A stretch of DNA of 62,913 bases, the filler included, from Hyphochytrium catenoides (lineage: Eukaryota; Protista; Hyphochytriomycota): NCBI GenBank assembly GCA_900088475.1. It is 5 parts of 5 records of this genome, joined end to end, with 100 filler letters (N's around TTAATTAATTAA, not from the genome) between each part and the next. Parts side by side here need not be neighbours in the genome. Positions count along the whole stretch, not along the records: positions 23,319 to 36,535 come from FLMG01003212.1; 4 more parts are not named here. One strand, 5' to 3'. Of this stretch, positions 2,817-35,970 are shown piece by piece. The position numbers and the translations under genes were made by a program. Every line of letters starts with the position of its first letter. Positions within the stretch are counted from its first letter, which is position 1. The notes below the pieces were generated by a model. The model was not told the DNA's origin. It worked only from the letters and a program-made list of their open reading frames with translations, and did not search any database.

Positions 2817-5800
2817 AGGAGAGAGAAAAGACAGGGAGAGAAAGAGAGAATAGCCAGCAGAAAAGGTGATCGAGAAGCCCCATCTTAACGAAGACTTTTA
2901 CCTTATCATTAGAGGGCTTCTCTGGCCCTTTGGGATCTGGCTCCAGATGATCTTTTTCCTGGTTGAGTGTCTCCTGCTGTGCGCTCCTTCCTGAAGACAG
3001 AAGCGTCGTCAGATGATTTTGAGCGAGTTGACGGTTGTAAATGAAGACAGAAGACACAGAGGAAAGAAGAGTAAGAGAGAGAGAGAGCAAGGAAGAAGTA
3101 GAGGGAGAGAGCGCTTTGCTGCTCAGGTCGGAGTAGGCAACCCCCGCCAGGAAACTCTCTTGCTGCTCAATTATTTATGGAGTTCGGTTGGCGGGTGATG
3201 AGAGCCCACCATGGAGAAGGAAAGATCGAGAGAGAAGCGAGACAGGTTACCGACAGAAGAAGCCACTTGTACCTTCTAGCACCGACGTATCAGGCTGTTC
3301 ACGCCTGCCCAACACCTCTTTCTCTCGAGCGTACACGATATTTTGCAGCTCTCGCACCTGGGCAGCTAATTGCTCGATCTCGGCTTGAAGGCTTCTAGCA
3401 AGCTCCTCTTTCTCTGATAGTTGGAGAGCAAGAGACCGTTGGTGCCCGGCTACCGTGACGAGGACATCAAAAGAAGCCATTCAAAAGAGAGAGGTAGGAA
3501 GAGGAGCAAGCGTGAATCTAGAGGTTCAACCATCTAAAGTTACCTCGCAGCTGGGCTGAGGCACAGTTCAGCTGTCCTTCTGTCTCCTGGAGAGCCAACC
3601 TTAACGCCTTAATCTCGCCAGTCGCAGTAGCCTCTTTCTCTGCCAAGAAAGCAACAAATTACTGGTGAGTTGAAGCTCTTTCCGGGATGGGAAGTGAAGT
3701 CGAAGAGAAGGACAAAGATACTGGAAGAACGGTAGGAAGAGATAAAGTGCCTGAGCAAGGAAGGGAAAACGGCAGTAAAGAAGTTGGGAGAGCCAGGAAT
3801 GAGTCTGTTGCATCAGAGTCTTGTTGGGATTGCCGTTAACAGAGGAATGGAAGGCAAAGAAACAAAGCTGAGAGAGGGTTCGGGATGATCATATTGTCTA
3901 TTTTACCTTGTAGCTCAACAACTGACTCTCTCGCTTCTTCTCTCTCTCGCTCGCTTGCTGCCAGTTTAGCTGTCGCCACAGCTAAGCGCTCTTTTGTCTC
4001 CTCCAGCACGAGTCTCAAACCTCTCAACGCACTCTCGGTCTCCTCTTTTTCTGTCCCAAGAGGAAAGCACTGAAAGGTGAGTGCTTCTCGTCGCATCTAA
4101 ACGTGAGAGAGAGTGACCAGCTCAAAGATAGAGTGTCATGGAGCGATGTAAAAAGACGTGTGTGTGTGCGCGCGAGAGAGGAAATGCAGGAAGCGCTGAA
4201 GCAGAGGGAGAGAGAGACAGGCGTATCACCTTCTAGAACACCTTCCAGCTGTTCCAATTTTCCTTGCACCTCTCTGCCTCGCTCATCCGCGATCTCCGTC
4301 ACCTGTCGCAGCTGGGCAGAGAGCTGGTCTCTCTTTGCTTGAAGAGTAGAAGCAAGCTCCTCTTTGTCTACATCAGCAGAGAAGAGGAGATCAATGTCAT
4401 TTTCTTATCCCAACCGTGGGACCAGGAGAGAGAGTGATGTCAGTAAGTCCTAGTGTATAAGGTACCTCGCAGCTGGCTTTGCAGCTCAAGAACTGTCTCT
4501 CTGGCGCCATCTCTCTCCAACTCCCGAGCAAAAACCCTGGCGGAGGCACAGTTTAGCCGTTCTTCGGTCTCCTGCAGAGCGGTTCTCAACGCTTTTATCT
4601 CGCTGTCCGTAGTAGCCTCTCTCTCTGTCACAGAAGAGGACAAAAGCAGTTATCGTCGGTGAGTGTGAAGGTTATTTGAACGAGTGAGGAGCCAAGACAC
4701 AGAGCTAGAGAATCGAAAGGGTGGCTGAGTGACGATCAACTGAACGGAAAACGGAAGGTAAACGCCCGGGCCAGGAAGAGGAAACTCTGAGTTGCCGAGT
4801 AGGTTAAGTCAGGTTCCTCTCGTGCAACAGCATTGATAAGGAAAGGAGTAACAGAGGCGATACGCGGAAAGAAAGAGAATAATGGGGAGAGAGCGAGCAA
4901 CAGCTACCACTTCTAGAGTTACTTACCTCGGATCTGCCGCTGGAGCTCCGTCACTGACTCTCTTGCTTGATCTCTCTCCCTCTCGTTTGCCTTCATTCTC
5001 TCACTGGCGACATCCAAGCGTCCCTGCGTCTCCTTAAGCACCACCTTCAAGCCTTCCAATTCTCTCTGTGCCTGGCTATGTTCTGTCCAACAATCAACCC
5101 AAAATTGATCAGAAACCGGCAAGAAGGAAGTGCTCAGATAGTAAACGAGTGATTGGCAGAAAAGGCCGCTGTGTAAGAGAGAAGAGAGAGAAAACAGATA
5201 TATCAAGTTACCTTTCAACGCACCTTTTAGCTGCTCGCCTTTGCTCTGCAGCTCTTTGCGATGCGCCTTCAACAGGTCTCTCAGCTTCCGCAAATGCGTA
5301 GCAAGTTTGTCTCTTTCGGCTTGAAGAGTTTTCGCAAGCTCGTCTTTGTCTGTATCGAGGAGAAGAGGCGCGCGAGTTTTTAGCTTCGTGATCGACCGAA
5401 GGAAGTCAGAGATAGCACGAGATATAAGAGCCAAGGAGATCTCGTAGCTCATTGCTTGTGCTACCTCGCAACTGGTGCTGAAGCTCAAGGAGTGTCTCTC
5501 TGGCGCCATCTCTCTCCAACTCCCGAGCAAGAACCCTGGCGGAGGCGCAGTTTAGCCGTTCTTCGGTCTCCTGCAGAGCGGTTCTCAATGCTTTTATCTC
5601 GCTGTCCGTAGTAGCCTCTCTCTCTGTCACAGAAGAGGATAAAACAGTTATCGTCGGTGAGTGTGAAGGTTATTTGAACGAGTGATGAGCCAAGACACAG
5701 AGCTGGAGAATCGAAAGGGTGGCTGACTGACGATCAAATGAACGGCAAAACGGAAGGTAAACGCCCGGGCCAGGAAGAGGAAACTCTGAGTTGCCGAGTA

Positions 5801-23419: not shown

Positions 23420-25390
23420 ATGGCGTCAAGAGATAACGAAGGCACTGCCTCCATAGTGGCCAGCGCCACAAAGGTCTATAGCACGGAGACTCTACGTAAG
23501 CACGGGCCTTCTGCCACCGTGCAGGGACCAAACCCCAAGCTCAGGTTATTAGGCGACCAGGACCGAATTTTCGAGGATGGGCCCTATCCGCGGCCATTTG
23601 AGTTTAATGAGGAAGTAGCGCAAGTCTTTGATGACATGGTGACGCGGTCGGTCCCCATGTACAGAGATGTCATCGATACACTCATCTATTGGGCCCATCG
23701 GTTCTATCAGCCTGGATCTGCAGTGTACGATCTTGGGTGCTCCACAGGGACCACTATTGATGTCTTAGCACAGACACTCGCCGATGGCGCCACATTCGTT
23801 GGCATAGACAACTCTAGGCCTATGACCCACAGAGCCAACGCAAAGCTCGCGTGGGCTAGAGAGAAGCACAACGTAAAGATATTATGTGAAGACATCACTA
23901 AGTGTGACTTCAATGACGCATCGCTGGTTATCATGAACTATACCTTGCAGTTCATCCCCTACAGTCAGCGGCACCGGCTCTTAAAGCGGATCTATAACGG
24001 ACTGCGACCAGGAGGTATTCTCTTCATCTCGGAGAAGGTAAGGGCGGCATATCCTCTCTTCCAGGAAACCGCCACGTGGATCTATGAAGACTTTAAGGCT
24101 CGGGCAGGATATTCGCAGAATGAGATTGCCAGAAAGAAGGAGGCCCTCGAAAACGTCTTGGTGCCACTAACGGACGCTGAACTGGCCGAGATGTTCCAGG
24201 CAGTAGGCTTCCAGACCTCAAATCTCATTGTGAAGTGGAACAACTTCTCCACGTTTGTGGCTTATAAGCGAATAGAGGACGAAGACCAGAAAGGAGCGAG
24301 GAAAGGTGGGAGTAACGCCTCGCCACAGGCAGCAGAAGAGAGAGAAAAGAAGTCAGCACATGCTTCTTCGGAGCAGAACCCTCTGAAAGCTCTTCCCTAT
24401 TCTGCGTTAAACGAGTTCTTCGACGAAGATCCGGATTACCTCTATCGACTCTTGAGCCACGAGGACGTGCAGACATTGAACGAACTGCGATGCAAGATCT
24501 TCGCAGAGAAACGGCCCCGTTTCAAAGCTCTGGAGAAAGTTGCTGCCATTTTGAAGTCTCTTCCACGCTTCCCATCTAAACGGCTAGTCGTGAATGAGTC
24601 CTCTGTGCACATAGGCGAGGTAGAGGAGCTGTCAGCGGAGCAGAGAGAGACTTTCTCCCAGTGTCTACGAGAACTCATCCCCTGGAAGAAGGGGCCTTTC
24701 ACCCTCTTTGGGACGGAGATTGACGCAGAATGGCGATCGGACTGGAAATGGGAGAGAATACGACCCCATATTAGCAGTTTGGAGGGCAAGGTAGTGGCTG
24801 ATGTAGGATGCGCCAACGGCTACTTCATGTACCGAATGTTGGAGCAGCATCCCAAGCTGGTGATTGGCTTGGACCCTAACGTTAAGGCTTGGATGGAGTT
24901 CCAGTTGCTGCAACACTTCGCATGTAGACGAGAACTTCAATTCGAGGTGCTGACAGTAGAGCATATGGACCTCCTGCCTGGCTGCTTCGACACCATCTTC
25001 TGTCTTGGAGTACTTTACCATTGCGTGGATCCCATTGGCATGCTACGGAAGATGTTCACCGCGCTGAAGCCAGGCGGGGAGATTATAGTCGATTGCCAGG
25101 GCATACCAGGAGAGCTACCGATGGCCCTTGTTCCGAGAAAAACGTATGCTAAGGCTAAAGGCATTTGGTTTATCCCCACCAGGTCCTGCTTGGAGAATAT
25201 GCTCCTGCGAGCAAACTTCAACGATCTTGAGTGCTTCTATGATGAGCCTCTGGAGGTGGACGAGCAGCGCGCAACCACTTGGGCTCCCATCAACAGCCTC
25301 GCAGAGTTCCTGGACCCAGAAGACCCCACAAAGACTGCAGAAGGCTATCCCGCCCCTAGGCGGATCTACTTCCGCGCCAAGCGTCGGTGA
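23420..25390 (+). CDS. cmoA-cmoB: CmoA-CmoB fusion: carboxy-S-adenosylmethionine synthase (N-terminal) plus tRNA ho5U34 carboxymethyltransferase (C-terminal), intronless, 656 aa
   Basis: CmoA: FEFNEEVAQVFDDMVTRSVPMY, YDLGCSTG, GIDNS, NYTLQF, PGGILFISEK, FKARAGYSQNEIARKKEALENVL. CmoB: PWKKGPF, IDAEWRSDWKW, DVGCANGY, GVLYH, EQRATTW, SLAEFLDPEDPTKTAEGYPAPRR. Confidence 0.95.
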   Translation: MASRDNEGTASIVASATKVYSTETLRKHGPSATVQGPNPKLRLLGDQDRIFEDGPYPRPFEFNEEVAQVFDDMVTRSVPMYRDVIDTLIYWAHRFYQPGSAVYDLGCSTGTTIDVLAQTLADGATFVGIDNSRPMTHRANAKLAWAREKHNVKILCEDITKCDFNDASLVIMNYTLQFIPYSQRHRLLKRIYNGLRPGGILFISEKVRAAYPLFQETATWIYEDFKARAGYSQNEIARKKEALENVLVPLTDAELAEMFQAVGFQTSNLIVKWNNFSTFVAYKRIEDEDQKGARKGGSNASPQAAEEREKKSAHASSEQNPLKALPYSALNEFFDEDPDYLYRLLSHEDVQTLNELRCKIFAEKRPRFKALEKVAAILKSLPRFPSKRLVVNESSVHIGEVEELSAEQRETFSQCLRELIPWKKGPFTLFGTEIDAEWRSDWKWERIRPHISSLEGKVVADVGCANGYFMYRMLEQHPKLVIGLDPNVKAWMEFQLLQHFACRRELQFEVLTVEHMDLLPGCFDTIFCLGVLYHCVDPIGMLRKMFTALKPGGEIIVDCQGIPGELPMALVPRKTYAKAKGIWFIPTRSCLENMLLRANFNDLECFYDEPLEVDEQRATTWAPINSLAEFLDPEDPTKTAEGYPAPRRIYFRAKRR

Positions 25391-25823
25391 CCTCATCACC
25401 AACGCTGACAATAAAAGACAGAACAACGCTTGCCCGCTTTCTCTATCCATTCTTGCCTTTCCTGCCATCATCACAGACCTCCTCCAGGTCCATTTGTAAC
25501 CAACTATACTCGAATAAAAAGGCACCCGAGCTCATATGCTGAATGTATATTTCTTGAGACTCGGGGGCATATTCGGGTCATTCCAGGATGAGTTATATGA
25601 GGGAAACGGAGAGTGTGGCCTGGAAGTTCCTCTTCGGCACTGGAGCGCCGCCTGTCGCTGATCGCTTCTCGCTCCTCCCGTCTCTCCATCCCATGCTGCT
25701 CCTGACAATAGATGAGCCAGTGCGGAGGATAAGGGCAAGAGCAGGAAAGGCATCGATGTATGCTGCAGGGATCGTGGCTTGGCATCGTAAGGAGCTGTTT
25801 CCTCCGGTCCAGGGCTTTGCACA

Positions 25824-28800
25824 ATGGCTGGCTTGGGGGAAGAAGAGAAGCAAGACCAGGTAATCTCTCACGTACGCCTATCAGTCCTTATAAGTTGGCC
25901 TGTGATCTCTTGCATAATCATTCCTTCTACTTGTCATGGTCAGGTTGAGAGTAGCTTAGCGGCAATAAGCTTTGCCGATATTCAAGTGCAAACTTTGGCA
26001 GGTGCAGGCGTCTCTATACAGCAAGAAGTGAAACAGGTCCGTAAGGATGTTGAGGCGGCGAAGGCACTTCTCGTGGTTGGGGTCACAAGGAGACAAGTTG
26101 CAGAAGAGCTTCGTCAAGTTCTTCAGGTTGCATCCTGGTCCTTTATACGGGGCGATACTCAGCATCTGTCTGGGGCTATCCGGCCGCTATGCTTTGTCAT
26201 CCTGCTCAGGGTCCTGACTCTTAATCTACGCTACAAGGTAAAAGATGGAGTTCCACTCTCTAGGCCTTCTGTGCCGAGGAAAGATTCTAAAATATCAACA
26301 GCCTCTATCCCCATGCGTCTTCTCTGTCCCTGCCACATGTCACATGGCACTTCTTTTGCTCTCTGTCTTAGCCCACCCTGCGCAGTCACTCAGCGCGATA
26401 CTCCTCTGGAGGTCTAGCTATCTCTTTCCCGACTTTCCTCTCTATGCCTAGGCAGTCTCTGCTTCCACTGGTCTGCTAATGCTTGACCTCCGCCCCATGC
26501 ACTTCCGCTCCACGTCCAGTCACGGATAGGCTACCATCTATCCTATCGCTTAGTCCTTAACGACATCTTGGGGCCCGTAACAGTTGAATCCGATGCCGGG
26601 CATTACCAAGCGAGTGAGAAGGGAGAGGCATCCGAGGGTCTAAGTGCCAAGAAACATCATCTTAAGGGTTTTGACAGAGAAGTTCCTTTCCGGTATCCAC
26701 CGACGCGGTGCTTGAGACTCCGCGTGCGGCACTTTATTATCTCACCGCCGGTGGTGAGGGAGGTCAAGGAATTTCATGCAGCCATGGCAGAGATTAAGTC
26801 CTTTCGGACAAGGAGGGAAGACTGCATGAAGGAAATTGAGGCGGTTAAGCGGGTAATTGAAACCTCAGTTTGCCTCTTGTTGTCCTTGTCCAGTTCTTCT
26901 TCTATCTATTCATTGTCCTTCCTTTCTACGAGCGCATCTCCTGTCAGCATTGATTAGCAGGCGTTAGACGCTAAACAGCTCATGTGGCTAAGGAACTTTC
27001 TCCTCTTCATTTCTCCTTTAGATCCACGACTGTCCAGACAATCAACACGGCTGGCTTGACCGCTGCCCATCGTGCCGCCTCATCTTGAATTGCCATAAAA
27101 AGTTCGTTGAGAACTGGTACCTTGAGTACGGGGTGCGGTGCGCTGTGCAGCTTGATTGGTACAGCAGCTTTCTGCTAGAAGACAGGGAAAGGCTGGGCAT
27201 GAAAGTGGATGAACTGCAGACGAAGGTTGTCGAACCGGCAAAGCTCATTGGAAGGTGTGCTTCACGGCACCCAACAGCATGGGGAGCTTTGCGTCATATC
27301 AACCTCCCTTTTCTCACTAATTCTTCCTAACCTGCTAAGTCTTTCTCTGATCGTCGCGTGCTCTGTCTTTCTCTGTTGCGTTACCAGCTTGGTCCGCACA
27401 GTATGCTCCATAAGCTTGCGAGATCCTTGCTTGAAATATGTGCATAGTTCTCACTGTGCAATCGTCCCCTGCGCACCTCCTATGTAGACGTTGTGAGGAG
27501 CAGCTAGGAGCCTGGCTGAGAGTCTGCTGGCTCCTTAAGCAATCTAAAGTCCGGGATCGGAAGCTGCAAAGCTCTCTAACTCGCTTAAAGGAAAGAAAGG
27601 AGGAAGCTCTTCGTCGATTAGCTGAGCGGAAGGAGACAGCTAGCACAAATCTACAACGACTATGGAGAGGCCACTTAGCAAGAAGGTACGACAGAGCTGT
27701 ATTGCGGGGTCCCGTTCAAGGAAAAGAGAGAGGGAGAGAGACTATCTACAACTTGAAGGATGATAGAGAGAGCTAGCACTCTAACAAGCCATGGAACCAG
27801 ACATGCTCTTCACCTCAAGCAGGAAAGGGACCTAGTCATGCGGAATCAAGCCAAACTGCAAGCGGAAAGGGAAGCTGAACATCTTCGGCAGAAGCGAGAG
27901 CAAGACTTCTTGGACAAGCTTAGAGCCGATGAACAGAAGATCGCATCCTATAGTTGCCCCTATGTCCGTTGCCCTAAATTCAGGCGAACAGGAGCCTTTA
28001 AAAGCGTAGAACAAATTGAGATTCACCGCCAACAGCATGAAGAAGAAACTCGAATGGAGGAGGAACAGAAGAAGAGGGAGGCTGAAGAGGCGGAGAAGGA
28101 GAGACAGAGAAGGAAAGAAAGAGAAGAAGAGATGCTACGAAGAACAAGAGACGAAGCAAAAGACTATGCAAGAGAAAGAGAACAAGAAGAAGAGAGCCGG
28201 CGAGGTGAGCTGATGGCCCTCGTAGCAGAGTCTTGGGAGTCCAAGCTTGTCTACAGCCATGAAAGAGCGAGAAGAAGAATGCGGAAAGAGCTATCGGCCC
28301 ATGCAACATTCCGTCCTGACATAGAAATGAGATGCTCTCGTAAGAAGTGCGCACATATCCTCTTTCTCTCCCAAGCGCAGTGGAGGATGCATGAGCGCTT
28401 CCATAAGGAAGACGCAGCACGAGAGAGAGAAAGAAGGAAGACTGAAAGCGAGGTTGCACAGCGGTCAGAAGCAGACACAATAGAGCGGCGGTTCGTTAGG
28501 GAGAGAGACTTCCTAGCAAACCTAAGGCAGCAGAGAGACATTGGTCGAAGTTGTCCTTCTCCCGTAATATCTATCCAACCAAGCCCTTTAGCTTCCTCTT
28601 CGCTCCCTCAACAAAAGCAGCTGGACGCTCCGTCTCCGAAGCCCATGCCGCCAACGTCTTTGGTGGACCTCTCGGCGCCAAAAACCAACCTCAAAAACAG
28701 TCCCAATAGATCGAAGTCACCCAGCAAGCTAGTGTCGTCATGTCCCGTTGCACTGCGTTCATCGCTCCGTACGAGTTCTCGGTTCTCTGAGCCCGTGGGT

Positions 28801-29352
28801 CAGCTGGTTCTCGTGTTTGGCCTCTCTTCAGCCGCCAATAGCCAGGATGATGTGCAGGACACGGCAGAGTACATCCGGAAGGTGAAGTGCCTCCCGTCTG
28901 TCATAAGCATTTGCAAGGCAAAGGTGGTGATAGGTAGAAGCTCTGACTTTTGTGACTCGATTGTGGACTCGGCTCGTTTTCCTCTGTCTGTCAGCCGGCA
29001 GCACCTGGCCATCACGGTCTCGAGGTCTGCCTTACACGGCCTAGCTGTCCACGTTGAGGACCTTGGGAGTGCGACAGGGACTTACGTACATAGGAGACAG
29101 GCGGTGGAACGACAAGAAGCCAACCTTTCTGAAGAGTCGCGAAGAGACATTACCAGAAACGAAGTCATCCGCCTTGCTCCTTATCAGCCCGTTGAGCTTG
29201 GCCCAGGGGATAGGCTTATTCTGGGTGTAGAGTCAGATAATCGGCCAGAAGCTCTGGAGCCTTGGACTGAGTCTGATGTTATTTATGAACTGGCCTTTAC
29301 GGCTGTAGGCAAGCTCCATCCAGTAGCGGTGAGTGGCAAGCTTAGAGGGTGA
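25824..29352 (+). CDS. Multi-exon protein with IQ motif, charged coiled coil, two C2H2-like fingers and C-terminal FHA domain (5' exons uncertain)
   Basis: IQ: TNLQRLWRGHLARR; fingers YSCPYVRC..F....QIEIHRQQH and CSRKKC..F.....WRMHERFH; FHA: VVIGRSS, SVSRQH, VEDLGSATGTYV, LGPGDRLILG. Confidence 0.72.
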
Positions 29353-29552: not shown

Positions 29553-32500
29553 CTACCAGTCTTCGTCGTGCTGCCTGGTGATGGAGTCTTGGGAGAGAGA
29601 GGGAAAAGGGGAAGAGACATGGGTACTTCTGCACCAGTTGTTGAAGGCACTTCTAGCAGACTGCAGCAGTTCTCCTCTCTTAACGAAAACGCGCAAATTT
29701 TTTTCCATAAAGACGCTGGGGGCATGCTCTTCATAGTGTTCCTTTGCCACAGGAAGACAGCCTTCTTCAAAGGTGCCTTCCTTGCGATAGAAGCGAACAT
29801 GCTCAACCGGGTCCATTGACCCCTTGCCGTGATGTATGCAGTGTATGTCCACGATAAGATCCTCTGGTGACAACTGGGGCATCTCCCTATCAATATGTTA
29901 GCGACATCGGCATATAATAAAGCGCGAGGAAATAAGGTAGAAGAGGAACAGGTGCCAGAAATGACAGAGAGGGTTTATGGAGAGAAGTGAGGTGGGCAAA
30001 TATTGGAGATCAGGGCAACGTACTCATCTGCATATTTGACAATGTCTGCCGCTAGCTCCTTCATAGGCTTGATCTTCCCATTTCTGCCGGTGCACCAGTC
30101 CGGGCAAAGCTATGTACCACTCAAAGTCAGAGCCTGAAATTTAGCGGTCACCCAGCTTGGCGAAAGAAAGCGTTGTGAATGAGACAAGTAGTACCCTACC
30201 TCAGCGCCACACTCGTGTGAATCCCAATTCTTCAGTGCCGCCTTCCCACAATATCGATAAATGTCTCGGACCTATGAACCCAACCCAAGGAATGAGAATT
30301 CAGATTTTTAGGAGGTCAATCTCAGCCTTCTCGTCGGCCGGAAGAAGTGGCCTTTTAGGGCAATCACCTTTATCCTCTTGAGGATCTCCTGGGCCGGAGC
30401 CAAGGCTGGAATGGTGGAGAGCTCCAGTAAGTCCAGAATGGAGTCCGTCAAGGAGGAATACGCCACCATATCAGTAAAAGCTTCAGAGATCTTGACAAGC
30501 ACCTTAGTGCCATCCTGAGTCCATCATGGAGGACAAGCGAAGACAATCAAAATGACAGCCTGTAGATGGAAGGACACTCCCTATTTCAACTAGGTATAAG
30601 CGTACCCCTACTATAACAACTAGCAGACGTTTACCTCTTTTGTTCTGCCAGGAAGAAGGAAATAGTCGTTCGCTGCTTCTAAGACGTCAACTATCATGTG
30701 CTCTATCGCGACCACTGTCTTGTGTGTATACATCGTGTGATGAAGCGTGAACCGTGTCTTAAACACCTATGAGAGGTTATGAAACGTGGGTCAAGGTATA
30801 CTATGCCAGGTTGCGAGCTAGAGGCTGCCTTCAGAGCGATTTACCTACCTCCATGACCTTGGCGACCAGCTTCTCTGGGAAGCAGATGCGCAGCGGGCTC
30901 AAAGGGTCCGTTAGGTCTCGTGAGACTCTAGCGGACATCATCTGGGAGGAGAAAACGTTTAAACACAATCATCGCTAGCAAGCTGCAGGGGACACGAAGG
31001 AGACAGAACAAACAGAGGTAGAGCTGTGGGGGTGTCGGCGAGGCTAGGGCGATGCAAAGAAGTATCAGATAGATTGACAATTAGCGGGGGATTACCAATA
31101 GCATGAAGTCATTGTTCGTCCGTATGCCTCCCATTTTGGCGTCACGTTTAAAATAATCCAGCTTGTCGACATCGAGACCCGACAGTGTGTTGTTGATGAT
31201 GTCATACAGGAACTCCTTGTTCTCCTCTCTAAGACGGCCCAGTCTCTGCCCTCCTCTCCCATAGCCTCGACCGGTGATCATTTCCTTGATGAAAACGATG
31301 TCCCGTTCTGCGAAGCCGTAGTCCCTCAGGTCGATCTCATTGTCCTTCAGCATATGGTCGAAGAGATCTATTGACCCTTGTTCATGAGTCCATTTACAGT
31401 CTGGGTTTACTAGTTGGACATAAAGAGAGAGGATGGGCAGAGAGGAAGAACCTCCGTAAGCAGTTAAAGCAAGCCTACGACAGGTGGGACGGAGACAAAC
31501 GACATGAGAGACTGAGAGGGAAAAATGATAGCAAACCACGACCAAACCTTTTCTCATGAAAGGTCCGTCGTAAAGATGGCTGAACGGGCCATGGCCTAGA
31601 TCGTGACAGAGTCCCGCCAACTTGACGCATAAAAGGTCCTATAAAGGGACATCGAAGCGCCGAATCAGAAAAGAAGTAGTGTCTTCCTAGGTGTAGATAC
31701 GACATTGCAAAGTGAAAGAGGCTTAATGGTCCTCTTGAAGAAGAAAGATCTGTGGGGATGTCCTTCACTTGATGACGAGGCCAACAGAAGGGCTCCGCTT
31801 ACTGTGTACGTAATGCTGAGGTAAGGCTGAACTTTGCGAAGATTCTCAACAAAGGTCTGAGCGAGATGCGCCACTCCTAAGCTGTGCACAAAGCGATTAT
31901 GGGACGCTGTGGGGTAGACATAAGAGCAGACCCCTAGCTGCTTTAGGCCTCTTAAGCGCTGGAACTGCGGGGTGTCAATGATCCTCATGCATACGGGTTC
32001 GAACTCCATCACACCGTGCACCGCATCATTTATCATCTATAATGGGCATCGTTGGGCATGTCTTAGTGCTGTGAGTACTCTTCGCTACTGGGATAGGGCT
32101 CATGTTATACCTTATTCGCTTGAAGGTAGTGCTTACCGCTGACAGGCTTGCCTGAGCGGTCAGTGCGGAGGGGGCTATGAAGTCTACTAAGGTTCCTCTT
32201 GCGCCTGTTCGTCATCGGACGCTGAGCGCTATGCGATAGCACCATTCATGGGCGCTATTGTGCACTTACTTTGAGTCATTTCTCATGGGCGTTGGAGGCA
32301 ACCCTTCCTTCTGCCGCACTTCACCCTTGTCCTCTTTGGTAGGGGTCTTCGCTGACTTGCTTTCTCCGTTCTCTTCTCTCTTTCTCTTCACTATAGTAGG
32401 ACAATACTTATAATCAGCGGGCGAGAACAGGCCCATCATTCTTCAGCGTCAATGACCTACATTGGCTACTGCCTTCAATAGAATTGCCGTGCGCAGCTTG

Positions 32501-33290: not shown

Positions 33291-35970
33291 ATGGCGGCCA
33301 AAGACGCCACTGAGGATCAGCAGAGGCTGACCAAAAACCAAAAGCGTAGACAGAAGAAGAAAGAGAAGAAGAAGCAGGTGCGTGCTTGCTTGAGTTGTGC
33401 GTGAGGTAGCGCTGTGCGTTGACTCCTATCTCTAAGGCGAAGGAGTTACACTCTGAACAGCCAAAGCCAGATCCTACGGACAATGCTCCCACAGAGGTAA
33501 GGAAAGCTGCACATGCCGTATCTACTGATGGCCTAACGATCCGTTGGGCAGAGCGAGTCTGAAGTAGATGTGGAAGTTGAATACGTAGCTCCTACTCTCG
33601 AACCCGAGCAGGAAGATCCTGCCTTCGCAGAGTTCAGGAAAGTCTTCGAGCGTTTCACTGCCGGCGATGAGCAGGTAGCGGCACAGGAAGAAACTGGGGA
33701 GAAGGAGAAAGAGAAAGATGAGGATAAGGACGACGAGGATGACGAGGACAATGAGGGAAGAATATCACGAAGGCAGAGGAAGCGGATCAATAGACTTAGT
33801 GTAGCAGAGCTCAAACAACTGGTCAACAGACCAGACGTCGTGGAGGTCAGTGACTTTTCTCCAGGGCTTACTGGCACTGTCTATTTAGTATGGTTGCTTG
33901 GCTTCCTTTCGCCCTACTCTTGCTTACCTTGGCCTAGCAAAACGTCCTTCACGTGCTGATCACAGGCGGTCTTTGGGCCACCACCACGATACGGCTGTTC
34001 ATTTTCACTTCTTCAGACTCTTGTCGGACTGCGGTGTTCCATCTCTAGTTATAATGTTGCGGTTATTGGAGTCTCGTGGAGGCCCTTACCTTTTGTGATG
34101 CTTTTGTTCTCTCAACTCTCTTTGTCTAGGCCCATGATGTAACATCGTCAGATCCGAAGCTGTTGGTACATCTGAAGGCCTACAGAAATACGGTCGAAGT
34201 GCCTCGACACTGGTGTCATAAGCGGAAGTACCTTCAGGGCAAACGCGGTATAGAAAAACCAGCGTTCAAACTGCCCGACTTTATCGAGGCAACTGGCATT
34301 GCAAAGCTCCGAGGAATGGATCAGGAGGAGGATGACAAGAAGGGAGTGAAAAGGAGACTAAGGGAGCGGATGCAACCCAAAATGGGAAGGATTGATATTG
34401 ACTATCAGCTCCTGCACGATGCATTTTTCCGGTTTCAGACGAAGCCCAAGATGACGATTATTGGCGATTTGTACGTTCAAATGGACGAGCTTGACTTCTT
34501 ACTCGATATGAGTCCGTTTCTCCTCTTTCCTTCGATCGTACTTCTCAAAACTGCCTTGACTATCTATTATTGGGTGGTCTCCTAACTCTTACGCTGCGCA
34601 TCAGGTATTACGAAGGCAAGGAGTTTGAGACCCGCATGGTAGACAAAAAGCCTGGCATCCTCTCCAACGAACTTCGACAGGCTCTAGGCATGGGTCCGAC
34701 CTCTCCTCCCCCATGGCTTATCAACATGCAACGCTATGGACCGCCTCCGTCCTACCCTAATCTAAAAATCCCAGGCCTCAATGCCCCTATCCCTCCTGGA
34801 GCAAGCTTTGGCTATCATGTTGGAGGATGGGGCAAACCTCCAGTGGACGAGCATGGACGCCCCTTGTATGGTGATGTCTTCTTCGGGACAGAGGACGGCC
34901 CTCAGACGCAGATAGAGCCTGTTGACAAGAATATCTGGGGCGAGTTAGCAGAGGAGGAAGAGGAGGAGGAAGAAGAAGAAGGTGAAGCTCAACTTTTAGT
35001 CCTCTGAGAGCCTAATCCTTTTGCTAGCACTTCAATAGGACCCGAATCACTGAGTGTACTCTAGTGGTCAATCCCCGTCGGCAACTTATGTTCTAACCGA
35101 GTACACTTCTCTGCAGAAGAAGAAGAGGCAGAGGGAGGACAGGAAGATATTGACATGAGCGGCATTATTACACCCAGCGAGGACGGAATGACGAGCGTAG
35201 CCTCTGGGTTGGAGACACCAATGTCCGCTGTGAACCTTAGGAAAACGACGTAAGTATTGGTGATTTGTTGTTGTCTCCTTTATGCTCCGAACGAAGTGCA
35301 ACCTATCTCTAGTTTCTGCTTTCCTTTATCATTGATAAGTGTCGGCTCACGATAGATTATATGACAGTGCGCAAAATGGCCTTGAGACGCCTGAGGCCCC
35401 GAAAGAGCTATTCAAGGTGCTGGAACAGAAGGACGTGGGCGTCGGTGGAGCGATTTACGGTTCCAGCCATGCATACGTCTTGCCCGGGAAGGCTAAAAAA
35501 GACGTAGGAGGCGTACAGGCGTCGATTGACGCTGCGGAGCTCGAAAATCTTGATGAAGAGACGCTGAAGCAGAAGTACGAAGAAGGCCTCGAGGTATGCA
35601 CGAACGATGTTGGACCAGCATCATAACCACCTTCTTTCTTAGCTTGCCCATCCTGTATACCATCTAGTTCTCGTATCCGTATGCTCCTTTCTTTCTCCCT
35701 CTCCGATGTAGTGGGTCTTAGCCCACAAGCTGCGTGCAACTCGCCGTCGCTGAGCGCTAAACTCGATTTATCTCGCCTAGCTTCATACGTATTGTCGACT
35801 TCCTCTATAGTGGTGGGTCGCATTTAAGTAGGCTAAACCATTGTTCGCAGGAGAAGAAGGCGACCAAGGAGGATATTAGCGATATTATGGAGGAGCACGA
35901 GAAGAAGAGGAAGAGGAAGTTAAAGGCGCAGGATGCAAAGAGCAAAAAGTACAAGGATTTTAAGTTCTAG
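33291..35970 (+). CDS. SF3B2: Splicing factor 3B subunit 2 (SAP145/Cus1)
   Basis: RLSVAELKQLVNRPDVVE|AHDVTSSDPKLLVHLKAYRNTVEVPRHW, KRKYLQGKRGIEKP, GDLYYEGKEFE, PPWLINMQRYGPPPSYP, GGWGKPPVD, C-terminus KKYKDFKF. Confidence 0.97.

Follow-up and report, generated by a model that had tools for sequence, protein, structure and literature searches.

Introduction

In bacteria, S-adenosylmethionine (SAM) and prephenate are converted to carboxy-S-adenosylmethionine (Cx-SAM), which is then used to form uridine-5-oxyacetic acid (cmo5U) in tRNA, an established route (PMC6599085, PMC10491745). Both Cx-SAM and cmo5U have so far been regarded in the literature as bacterial. The present analysis concerns a gene of the hyphochytrid Hyphochytrium catenoides (assembly GCA_900088475.1), in which the counterparts of the two bacterial enzymes, the carboxy-SAM synthase CmoA and the tRNA U34 carboxymethyltransferase CmoB, are joined in one protein. 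The gene is located in a stretch of 62,913 nucleotides (the window), composed of five parts of five records of this genome with 100 filler letters between each part and the next; it belongs to the part taken from FLMG01003212.1 (23319-36535), and all positions given below, except those within individual bacterial or database loci, are those of the window.

The closest described systems are the stand-alone bacterial enzymes. The cofactor-contacting residues of Escherichia coli CmoA (PDB 4GEK, 4IWN) have been listed by Byrne et al., with Arg199 forming a salt bridge to the carboxylate of Cx-SAM (PMC3663124). In CmoB, the residues K91, Y200 and R315 (E. coli numbering) coordinate the carboxymethyl group/carboxylate of Cx-SAM (PMC10491745). 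The same Cx-SAM chemistry, with conserved Cx-SAM-binding residues, is found in TglE/TglF of 3-thiaglutamate formation and in MccS of microcin C biosynthesis, which differ in having peptide or nucleotide-peptide substrates and in being encoded within biosynthetic gene clusters (PMC10491745). Concerning eukaryotes, Sakai et al. (2019) reported that trhO homologues are widespread, recorded trhO-trmR fusions in Phaeodactylum and Phytophthora and proposed that 5-hydroxyuridine derivatives (xo5U) occur in eukaryotic tRNA (PMC6599085). Those fusions likewise represent bacterial xo5U-pathway enzymes joined in stramenopiles, but they combine the hydroxylase with a 5-methoxyuridine (mo5U) methyltransferase.

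A single reading frame for CmoA and CmoB

The gene occupied positions 23420-25390 on the plus strand and consisted of a complete intronless open reading frame (ORF) of 656 amino acids followed by a stop. According to the original prediction, this frame carries a full CmoA domain and a full CmoB domain, which was confirmed by ORF and profile searches. An in-frame TGA at 23387, upstream of the frame, lies inside genuine genomic sequence, so that the ATG at 23420 is the first start past a genuine stop and not past filler. The extensions preceding the CmoA core were 44-45 residues long in all three members of the branch to which the H. catenoides fusion belongs, and this similarity in length supports the ATG at 23420 as the start. 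The genomic piece begins at 23319 and an AG dinucleotide is present at 23413-23414, shortly before the ATG. Downstream of the stop, two AATAAA hexamers at 25410 and 25513 (25410-25518, plus strand) are candidate poly(A) signals judging from sequence; the prediction had placed such signals at about 25411 and 25513.

It is very likely that the identity of the gene as a CmoA-CmoB fusion, its bacterial ancestry and its residence in a eukaryotic genome hold jointly. The view of the locus as an intronless fusion of bacterial ancestry in a eukaryotic nuclear context was upheld, and the evidence for its parts is given in the following sections.

The CmoA and CmoB halves

The CmoA domain comprised residues 59-283 (23594-24268, plus strand). 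The CmoA equivalog model TIGR00740 (NCBIfam) matched exactly this range with 218.7 bits, above its curated cut-off of 193.3, and the enterobacterial CmoA model NF011995 remained below its cut-off (151.8 vs 285). Solved CmoA structures (1im8, 4gek) matched the fusion at E values of about 1e-41, and the half shares the class I methyltransferase fold with E. coli CmoA and with YecO of Haemophilus influenzae (1IM8), the identity to E. coli CmoA being 39% over 223 residues. Eight of the nine cofactor contacts of the E. coli enzyme that were checked had been kept: Y39, D62, G64, N90, D117, N132, F137 and E164 corresponded to the identical residues Y81, D104, G106, N131, D158, N173, F178 and E205. 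The exception was Arg199, whose position is occupied by Lys240 (codon 24137-24139, plus strand, from the alignment with E. coli CmoA). This lysine was invariant in 25 of 25 fusions in alignment A1, and from the sequences the replacement would be a trait of the eukaryotic clade at least and does not look like decay. Apart from this position, E. coli CmoA differs in being separate from CmoB and in having no counterpart of the 45-residue N-terminal extension.

The CmoB domain comprised residues 347-655 (24458-25384, plus strand) and included the N-terminal helical part that is CmoB's own. NF011650 scored 346.8 (cut-off 209) over this range, covering profile positions 13-323 of 324, TIGR00452 scored 343.1 (cut-off 275), and Pfam Methyltransf_9 (PF08003) matched with an E value of 9.9e-95. 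A profile comparison of each half had been proposed as a check together with the original prediction; its outcome was positive for CmoA with TIGR00740 and for CmoB with both NF011650 and TIGR00452. The solved CmoB structures 4p7c, 4qnu and 7ct8 were matched at 1e-61 to 1e-63. The enzymes of E. coli, Pseudomonas and Vibrio (4QNU, 4P7C, 7CT8) share with the fusion the CmoB-specific N-terminal part and the K91/Y200/R315 equivalents, with 40% identity to E. coli CmoB over 281 residues, but they are stand-alone proteins, while in H. catenoides the domain forms the C-terminal half of a nucleus-encoded fusion. The retention of the CmoB motif lysine, tyrosine and arginine, noted in the prediction, was borne out by alignment with the E. 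coli enzyme: Lys424 of PWKKGP (24689-24691), which corresponds to the Cx-SAM selectivity residue Lys91, Tyr533 of GVLYH (25016-25018), equivalent to Tyr200, and Arg648 of PAPRR (25361-25363), equivalent to Arg315, all on the plus strand. The K424/Y533/R648 triad was invariant across the family alignment.

N-terminus, linker and predicted fold

An AlphaFold model, built on an alignment of 25 fusion proteins, contained two confident domains, residues 79-288 and 331-656, with a predicted local distance difference test (pLDDT) of about 90, and low confidence at the N-terminus and in the linker. The predicted template modelling score (pTM) was 0.54; therefore, no defined domain-to-domain arrangement can be taken from the model. 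The two domains are connected by a charged, low-complexity, disordered linker of residues 289-325 (24284-24394, plus strand; pLDDT below 50), and from about residue 331 the chain is already the N-terminal helical part of CmoB. The linker placed by the prediction at about 24270-24420 is thus real and of the described character, but shorter, since the low AlphaFold confidence is limited to residues 289-325. Its length and composition varied among the fusions.

The N-terminal extension (residues 1-45; 23420-23554, plus strand), which had low AlphaFold confidence, showed neither a membrane helix nor an obvious targeting peptide. It aligned with the hydrophobic anchor region of the crown-clade fusions, in most of which an N-terminal hydrophobic helix precedes basic residues and a conserved LGP motif. 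The top 19-residue Kyte-Doolittle score was 0.23 in the H. catenoides fusion vs 1.5-2.5 in most other fusions. The helix was also absent from P0049 and P0051 and from the nearest relatives P0019 and P0052, whose extensions are similarly long, indicating that it is a feature of the crown group and not of the whole clade. Because a membrane helix and a recognisable targeting peptide are both lacking, the H. catenoides protein is predicted to be soluble and probably cytosolic. Within the N-terminal hydrophobic segment of the diatom-clade proteins P0006, P0007, P0009, P0010, P0013, P0028-P0030, P0032, P0037, P0041 and P0092, a stretch A-[AS]-S-[LF]-A-T-Y was conserved. It could be a part of the membrane anchor or, if we take it to resemble the ASAFAP cleavage motif, a signal-peptide cleavage site for plastid or periplastid targeting.

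Fused genes in other eukaryotes

The fusion is not specific to this genome, as might have been assumed from the locus alone, but belongs to an old eukaryotic clade already present in public databases. A search with the full-length protein gave 66 clusters, mostly of fused proteins of 570-860 amino acids, the best being 51% identical. The fused matches included GFH58728.1 of Chaetoceros tenuissimus, automatically named 'tRNA (mo5U34)-methyltransferase', several transcripts of the MMETSP collection, among them P0034 from Chaetoceros curvisetus, and EukProt entries such as P0027. The name prefix of the latter, Pgem, presumably stands for an ichthyosporean, an organism without a plastid. In an exhaustive search of 1.84 billion representatives, the fusions formed roughly ten clusters at 50% identity, and a search of the ESM Atlas found bacterial CmoB clusters only. 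Matches of 570-640 amino acids that could pass for bacterial fusions were rejected as such, since they stem from eukaryotic genes that a prokaryotic gene caller had truncated at an intron. Other fusions adjoined genes for histones, HSF, FKBP, a Vps15-like kinase and JmjC proteins.

The database fusions had the same domain order, with CmoA first, were 42-52% identical to the H. catenoides protein over 94-99% of the length, kept K240 and the CmoB triad without exception and fell into the same clade in both domain trees. The nearest relatives were L083 (72% identity) and L091 (66-71%), in both of which the same fused gene contains canonical GT...AG introns, in contrast to the intronless copy of H. 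catenoides. Together with L083, L091 and P0019, the H. catenoides fusion makes up a basal branch without the N-terminal membrane helix of most others; it adds a new, basal member without an anchor to the eukaryotic form of a bacterial system that is itself known. Literature searches combining cmo5U or CmoB with diatoms, chloroplasts or fusions returned no description of a eukaryotic CmoA-CmoB fusion, and the proteins, recorded under automatic names, have apparently never been studied.

One eukaryotic fusion, P0115 (L088:3605-5473), located beside histone, HSF and FKBP genes, was very divergent (27-34% identity to the H. catenoides protein) and formed a long branch; its rapid evolution may indicate that its function has changed.

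Phylogenetic position and origin of the fusion

Trees were calculated for each half separately, as had been suggested with the prediction, and both halves grouped with cmoA and cmoB, respectively, in the company of the other eukaryotic fusions. By the Shimodaira-Hasegawa-like approximate likelihood ratio test (SH-aLRT), the eukaryotic fusion clade had a support of 95 in the CmoB tree (214 rows) and 96 in the CmoA tree (163 rows), and in a careful concatenated tree (62 rows) its support was 100/98. Every eukaryotic fusion, including that of H. catenoides, was placed in this single clade in all three trees. In the concatenated tree, the H. catenoides fusion and L091 formed the first branch (100/99), with the remaining eukaryotes as its sister (100/99). 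Oligoflexus, Oligoflexales and filamentous cyanobacteria together formed the sister of the whole eukaryotic clade (87/79); the clade that unites the two had full support (100/100). In the approximately unbiased (AU) test, a clade of eukaryotes and cyanobacteria was not rejected (p = 0.069). With regard to an endosymbiotic origin from the plastid, and thus from cyanobacteria, the eukaryotes stood outside the cyanobacteria in the best tree, yet the same AU value applies. The best tree and the AU result together therefore point to a cyanobacterium-like or an Oligoflexia-like donor lineage. Since both halves share one history, the trees fit a single transfer of an adjacent gene pair and a single fusion, followed by spread among eukaryotes, in agreement with the predicted sequence of transfer and subsequent fusion.

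The bacterial side was covered by a scan of one genome per species using two degenerate peptide patterns derived from A1, one of which, KK[ED]AL[ME]NV, spans the Lys240 site. The scan yielded 80 loci from Oligoflexia and other Bdellovibrionota, filamentous cyanobacteria, Desulfobulbales and Oceanispirochaeta. The cmoA-cmoB operons of Oligoflexia and filamentous cyanobacteria (Lyngbya, Arthrospira, Trichodesmium, Microcoleaceae) were the closest bacterial relatives found, with about 50-55% BLAST identity per half and up to 62% over the trimmed CmoB columns; they differ from the fusion in consisting of two separate genes, sometimes a single in-frame stop apart, and in having no linker. In all 69 of the best loci with both genes, cmoA and cmoB were separate, adjacent or overlapping ORFs, and an already-fused bacterial donor was not found among them. 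In 15 of the 69 loci (L005-L008, L011-L017, L019, L020, L054 and L065, with junctions near locus position 4700-4750) the two genes shared a reading frame and were separated by exactly one stop codon, so that loss of the cmoA stop codon alone would fuse them. Accordingly modelled on these loci, the origin of the eukaryotic gene would have included transfer of an adjacent bacterial cmoA-cmoB pair to a eukaryote, joining of cmoA to cmoB by the loss of a single stop codon, and growth of the variable charged linker after the fusion.

The general statement that cmoA and cmoB are separate adjacent genes in Gram-negative bacteria held for the 69 best loci, but not for P0087, a genuine bacterial CmoA-CmoB fusion of 562 amino acids found on six metagenome contigs (L085:6001-7689; also L086 and L087) in a Gram-negative context of TonB, TolB, Pal, Ppx and Lgt. 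It has the domain order of the eukaryotic fusions, but is only 31% (CmoA) and 42% (CmoB) identical, has neither linker nor extension and forms a very long, distant branch. As P0087 is far from the eukaryotic clade in the trees, fusion must have arisen independently at least twice.

Flanking genes were identifiable at two of the sister-clade loci: cmoAB stood beside ettA and prfC in one (L023) and beside dusB in the other (L004), and no biosynthetic clusters were found beside cmoAB in those two.

Proposed function

It is fairly probable that the locus represents an intact nuclear gene, descended from a bacterial cmoA-cmoB pair, for a bifunctional carboxy-SAM synthase and tRNA U34 carboxymethyltransferase. 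By analogy with the bacterial pathway, the N-terminal half would make Cx-SAM from SAM and prephenate, and the C-terminal half would transfer the carboxymethyl group onto 5-hydroxyuridine at position 34 of tRNA, giving cmo5U. For such a pathway, U34 would also have to be hydroxylated, by a TrhO homologue, and prephenate would have to be available. In the crown forms, the N-terminal helix and the basic residues probably tether the catalytic unit to a membrane. Judging from the conserved residues and profiles, an active carboxy-SAM-dependent carboxymethyltransferase is likely, and tRNA U34 is on balance its probable acceptor. The position of the sister loci beside ettA/prfC and dusB, and not beside biosynthetic clusters, favours a tRNA role for this branch.

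Several points weigh against this interpretation. cmo5U was not detected in tRNA of Arabidopsis, yeast or calf (PMC2956550), xo5U was not found in chloroplast tRNA of Chlamydomonas (PMC8877259), and our literature search found no report of cmo5U in eukaryotes. CmoA/CmoB-like pairs are known to serve other acceptors, namely a peptide thiol in TglE/TglF and microcin C biosynthesis in MccS (PMC10491745). The N-terminal membrane helix of most members is unusual for a tRNA enzyme. The Arg199 position of CmoA has been changed to Lys, although the change appears conservative, with the positive charge kept. Finally, there is a small chance that an exon lies upstream of the ATG at 23420, beyond the edge of the genomic piece.

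In its widest form, the proposal would be that a range of eukaryotes, including H. catenoides, diatoms and other protists, make Cx-SAM and put cmo5U on their own cytosolic tRNAs, the crown enzyme being membrane-tethered and facing the cytosol; we regard this as doubtful. If true, it would link eukaryotic decoding to prephenate, an intermediate of the shikimate pathway. An active enzyme would add a new cofactor to eukaryotic metabolism and a new wobble modification to eukaryotic decoding, and it would illustrate clearly how stop-codon loss can turn a bacterial operon into one eukaryotic gene. With a fusion of both cmo5U enzymes conserved and transcribed across eukaryotes, the xo5U suggestion of Sakai et al. 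(2019) becomes testable in culturable diatoms. Should the acceptor not be tRNA, the anchored forms would suggest a carboxymethylation pathway not known so far.

Alternative interpretations

One alternative, an artefact in which contaminant bacterial DNA was misassembled onto eukaryotic sequence, would agree with the lack of introns in the gene and with a G+C content at third codon positions (GC3) of 0.61, slightly over the 0.51-0.56 of its neighbours. However, the protein falls inside a well-supported eukaryotic fusion clade apart from all bacterial sequences, and its closest relatives are interrupted by spliceosomal introns. None of the 69 bacterial loci with both genes was fused, and the sole bacterial fusion found is a distant one. 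The SAMHD1-like and SF3B2 genes on the piece are spliced, and other fusions have histone, HSF and Vps15-like kinase genes around them. The GC content was even along the 13.2-kb piece, the overall value of the fusion fitting in, and the trinucleotide composition of its 2-kb block was inside the range of the other blocks of the piece. Moreover, of the words sampled from 23319-26000, a fraction of 0.95 was present in an H. catenoides DNA run from 2011 and 0.91 in an independent one from 2017. An assembly artefact is thus very improbable. The view that the gene is a silent or decaying remnant of an old transfer and no longer in use is equally improbable: the frame of 656 codons is open, all cofactor-binding residues tested are kept (with Lys at the CmoA Arg199 position), the terminal branch is short (0.14-0.28), and homologues are transcribed in other eukaryotes, as seen from the MMETSP transcripts.

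More weight must be given to the acceptor and to the compartment. The enzyme might perform the same Cx-SAM chemistry on another acceptor, for example the thiol of a peptide, a lipid head group, a small metabolite or a different nucleic acid, especially in the anchored crown forms. The precedents of TglE/TglF and MccS speak for this (PMC10491745), and, as the Cx-SAM-binding residues are kept in these enzymes too, the residues do not identify the acceptor. The transmembrane helix in most crown-clade fusions, the absence of any report of cmo5U from eukaryotes and the recruitment of a Cx-SAM synthase elsewhere, in a fusion of CmoA with a DNA C5-methyltransferase (P0065, see below), point in the same direction. 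On the other hand, eukaryotes are known to have tRNA-modifying enzymes that are tethered to a membrane and face the cytosol, both CmoB equivalog models were well exceeded over a near-full profile that included the CmoB-specific N-terminal part, and the sister cmoAB pairs, where their flanks could be identified, stood beside translation and tRNA genes and not beside clusters for ribosomally synthesised and post-translationally modified peptides (RiPPs). The neighbours of the fusion itself, genes for FHA, SAMHD1-like and SF3B2 proteins, also provide no RiPP or microcin cluster context. A different acceptor is therefore rather unlikely. Still less probable is a cmo5U enzyme working on bacterial-type tRNAs in a mitochondrion or plastid. 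This would accord with the bacterial ancestry of the gene, with the presence of cyanobacteria among its nearest bacterial relatives and the AU value for eukaryotes plus cyanobacteria, and with the diatom A-[AS]-S-[LF]-A-T-Y stretch, presumably readable as ASAFAP-like. Furthermore, four-codon boxes in organellar tRNA sets rely on U34 (PMC8877259). But neither a hydrophobic nor an amphipathic presequence is present in the protein of H. catenoides and its nearest relatives, Asp and Glu being among the first residues, the fusion also occurs in P0027, presumably of a plastid-less ichthyosporean, the eukaryotic clade is sister to the cyanobacteria and not nested in them in the best tree, and the basic residues that follow the hydrophobic segments in other fusions resemble signal anchors which leave the catalytic part in the cytosol.

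Neighbouring genes and other observations

The original prediction had named FHA, SAMHD1 and SF3B2 genes as neighbours on the same contig of about 13 kb, and all three were identified, the latter two with exons. An FHA-domain ORF (profile match) was present at 27760-29352 on the plus strand, a SAMHD1-like HD-domain gene of several exons at 29556-32036 on the minus strand (5e-23 to SAMHD1 structures), and the SF3B2 gene (DUF382 and PSP domains), split into exons, at 33537-35967 on the plus strand (1e-51 to human SF3B2). A search for tRNA genes in 23319-28000 found none. Between the stop of the fusion and the FHA ORF (25400-27760, about 2.3 kb) only ORFs without a Pfam match were present, at 25824-26417 and 26568-26957.

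Two further proteins with one of the domains in a different combination were encountered. P0157 (529 amino acids) has a full CmoB domain at residues 230-528, preceded by about 210 residues for which no NCBIfam model gave a match. P0065 of Reichenbachiella carrageenanivorans (765 amino acids) combines a CmoA domain (TIGR00740, 193.6 bits, residues 3-235) with a Dcm-type DNA cytosine-5 methyltransferase (TIGR00675, 127 bits, residues 302-643) and may represent a natural system that carboxymethylates DNA with Cx-SAM.

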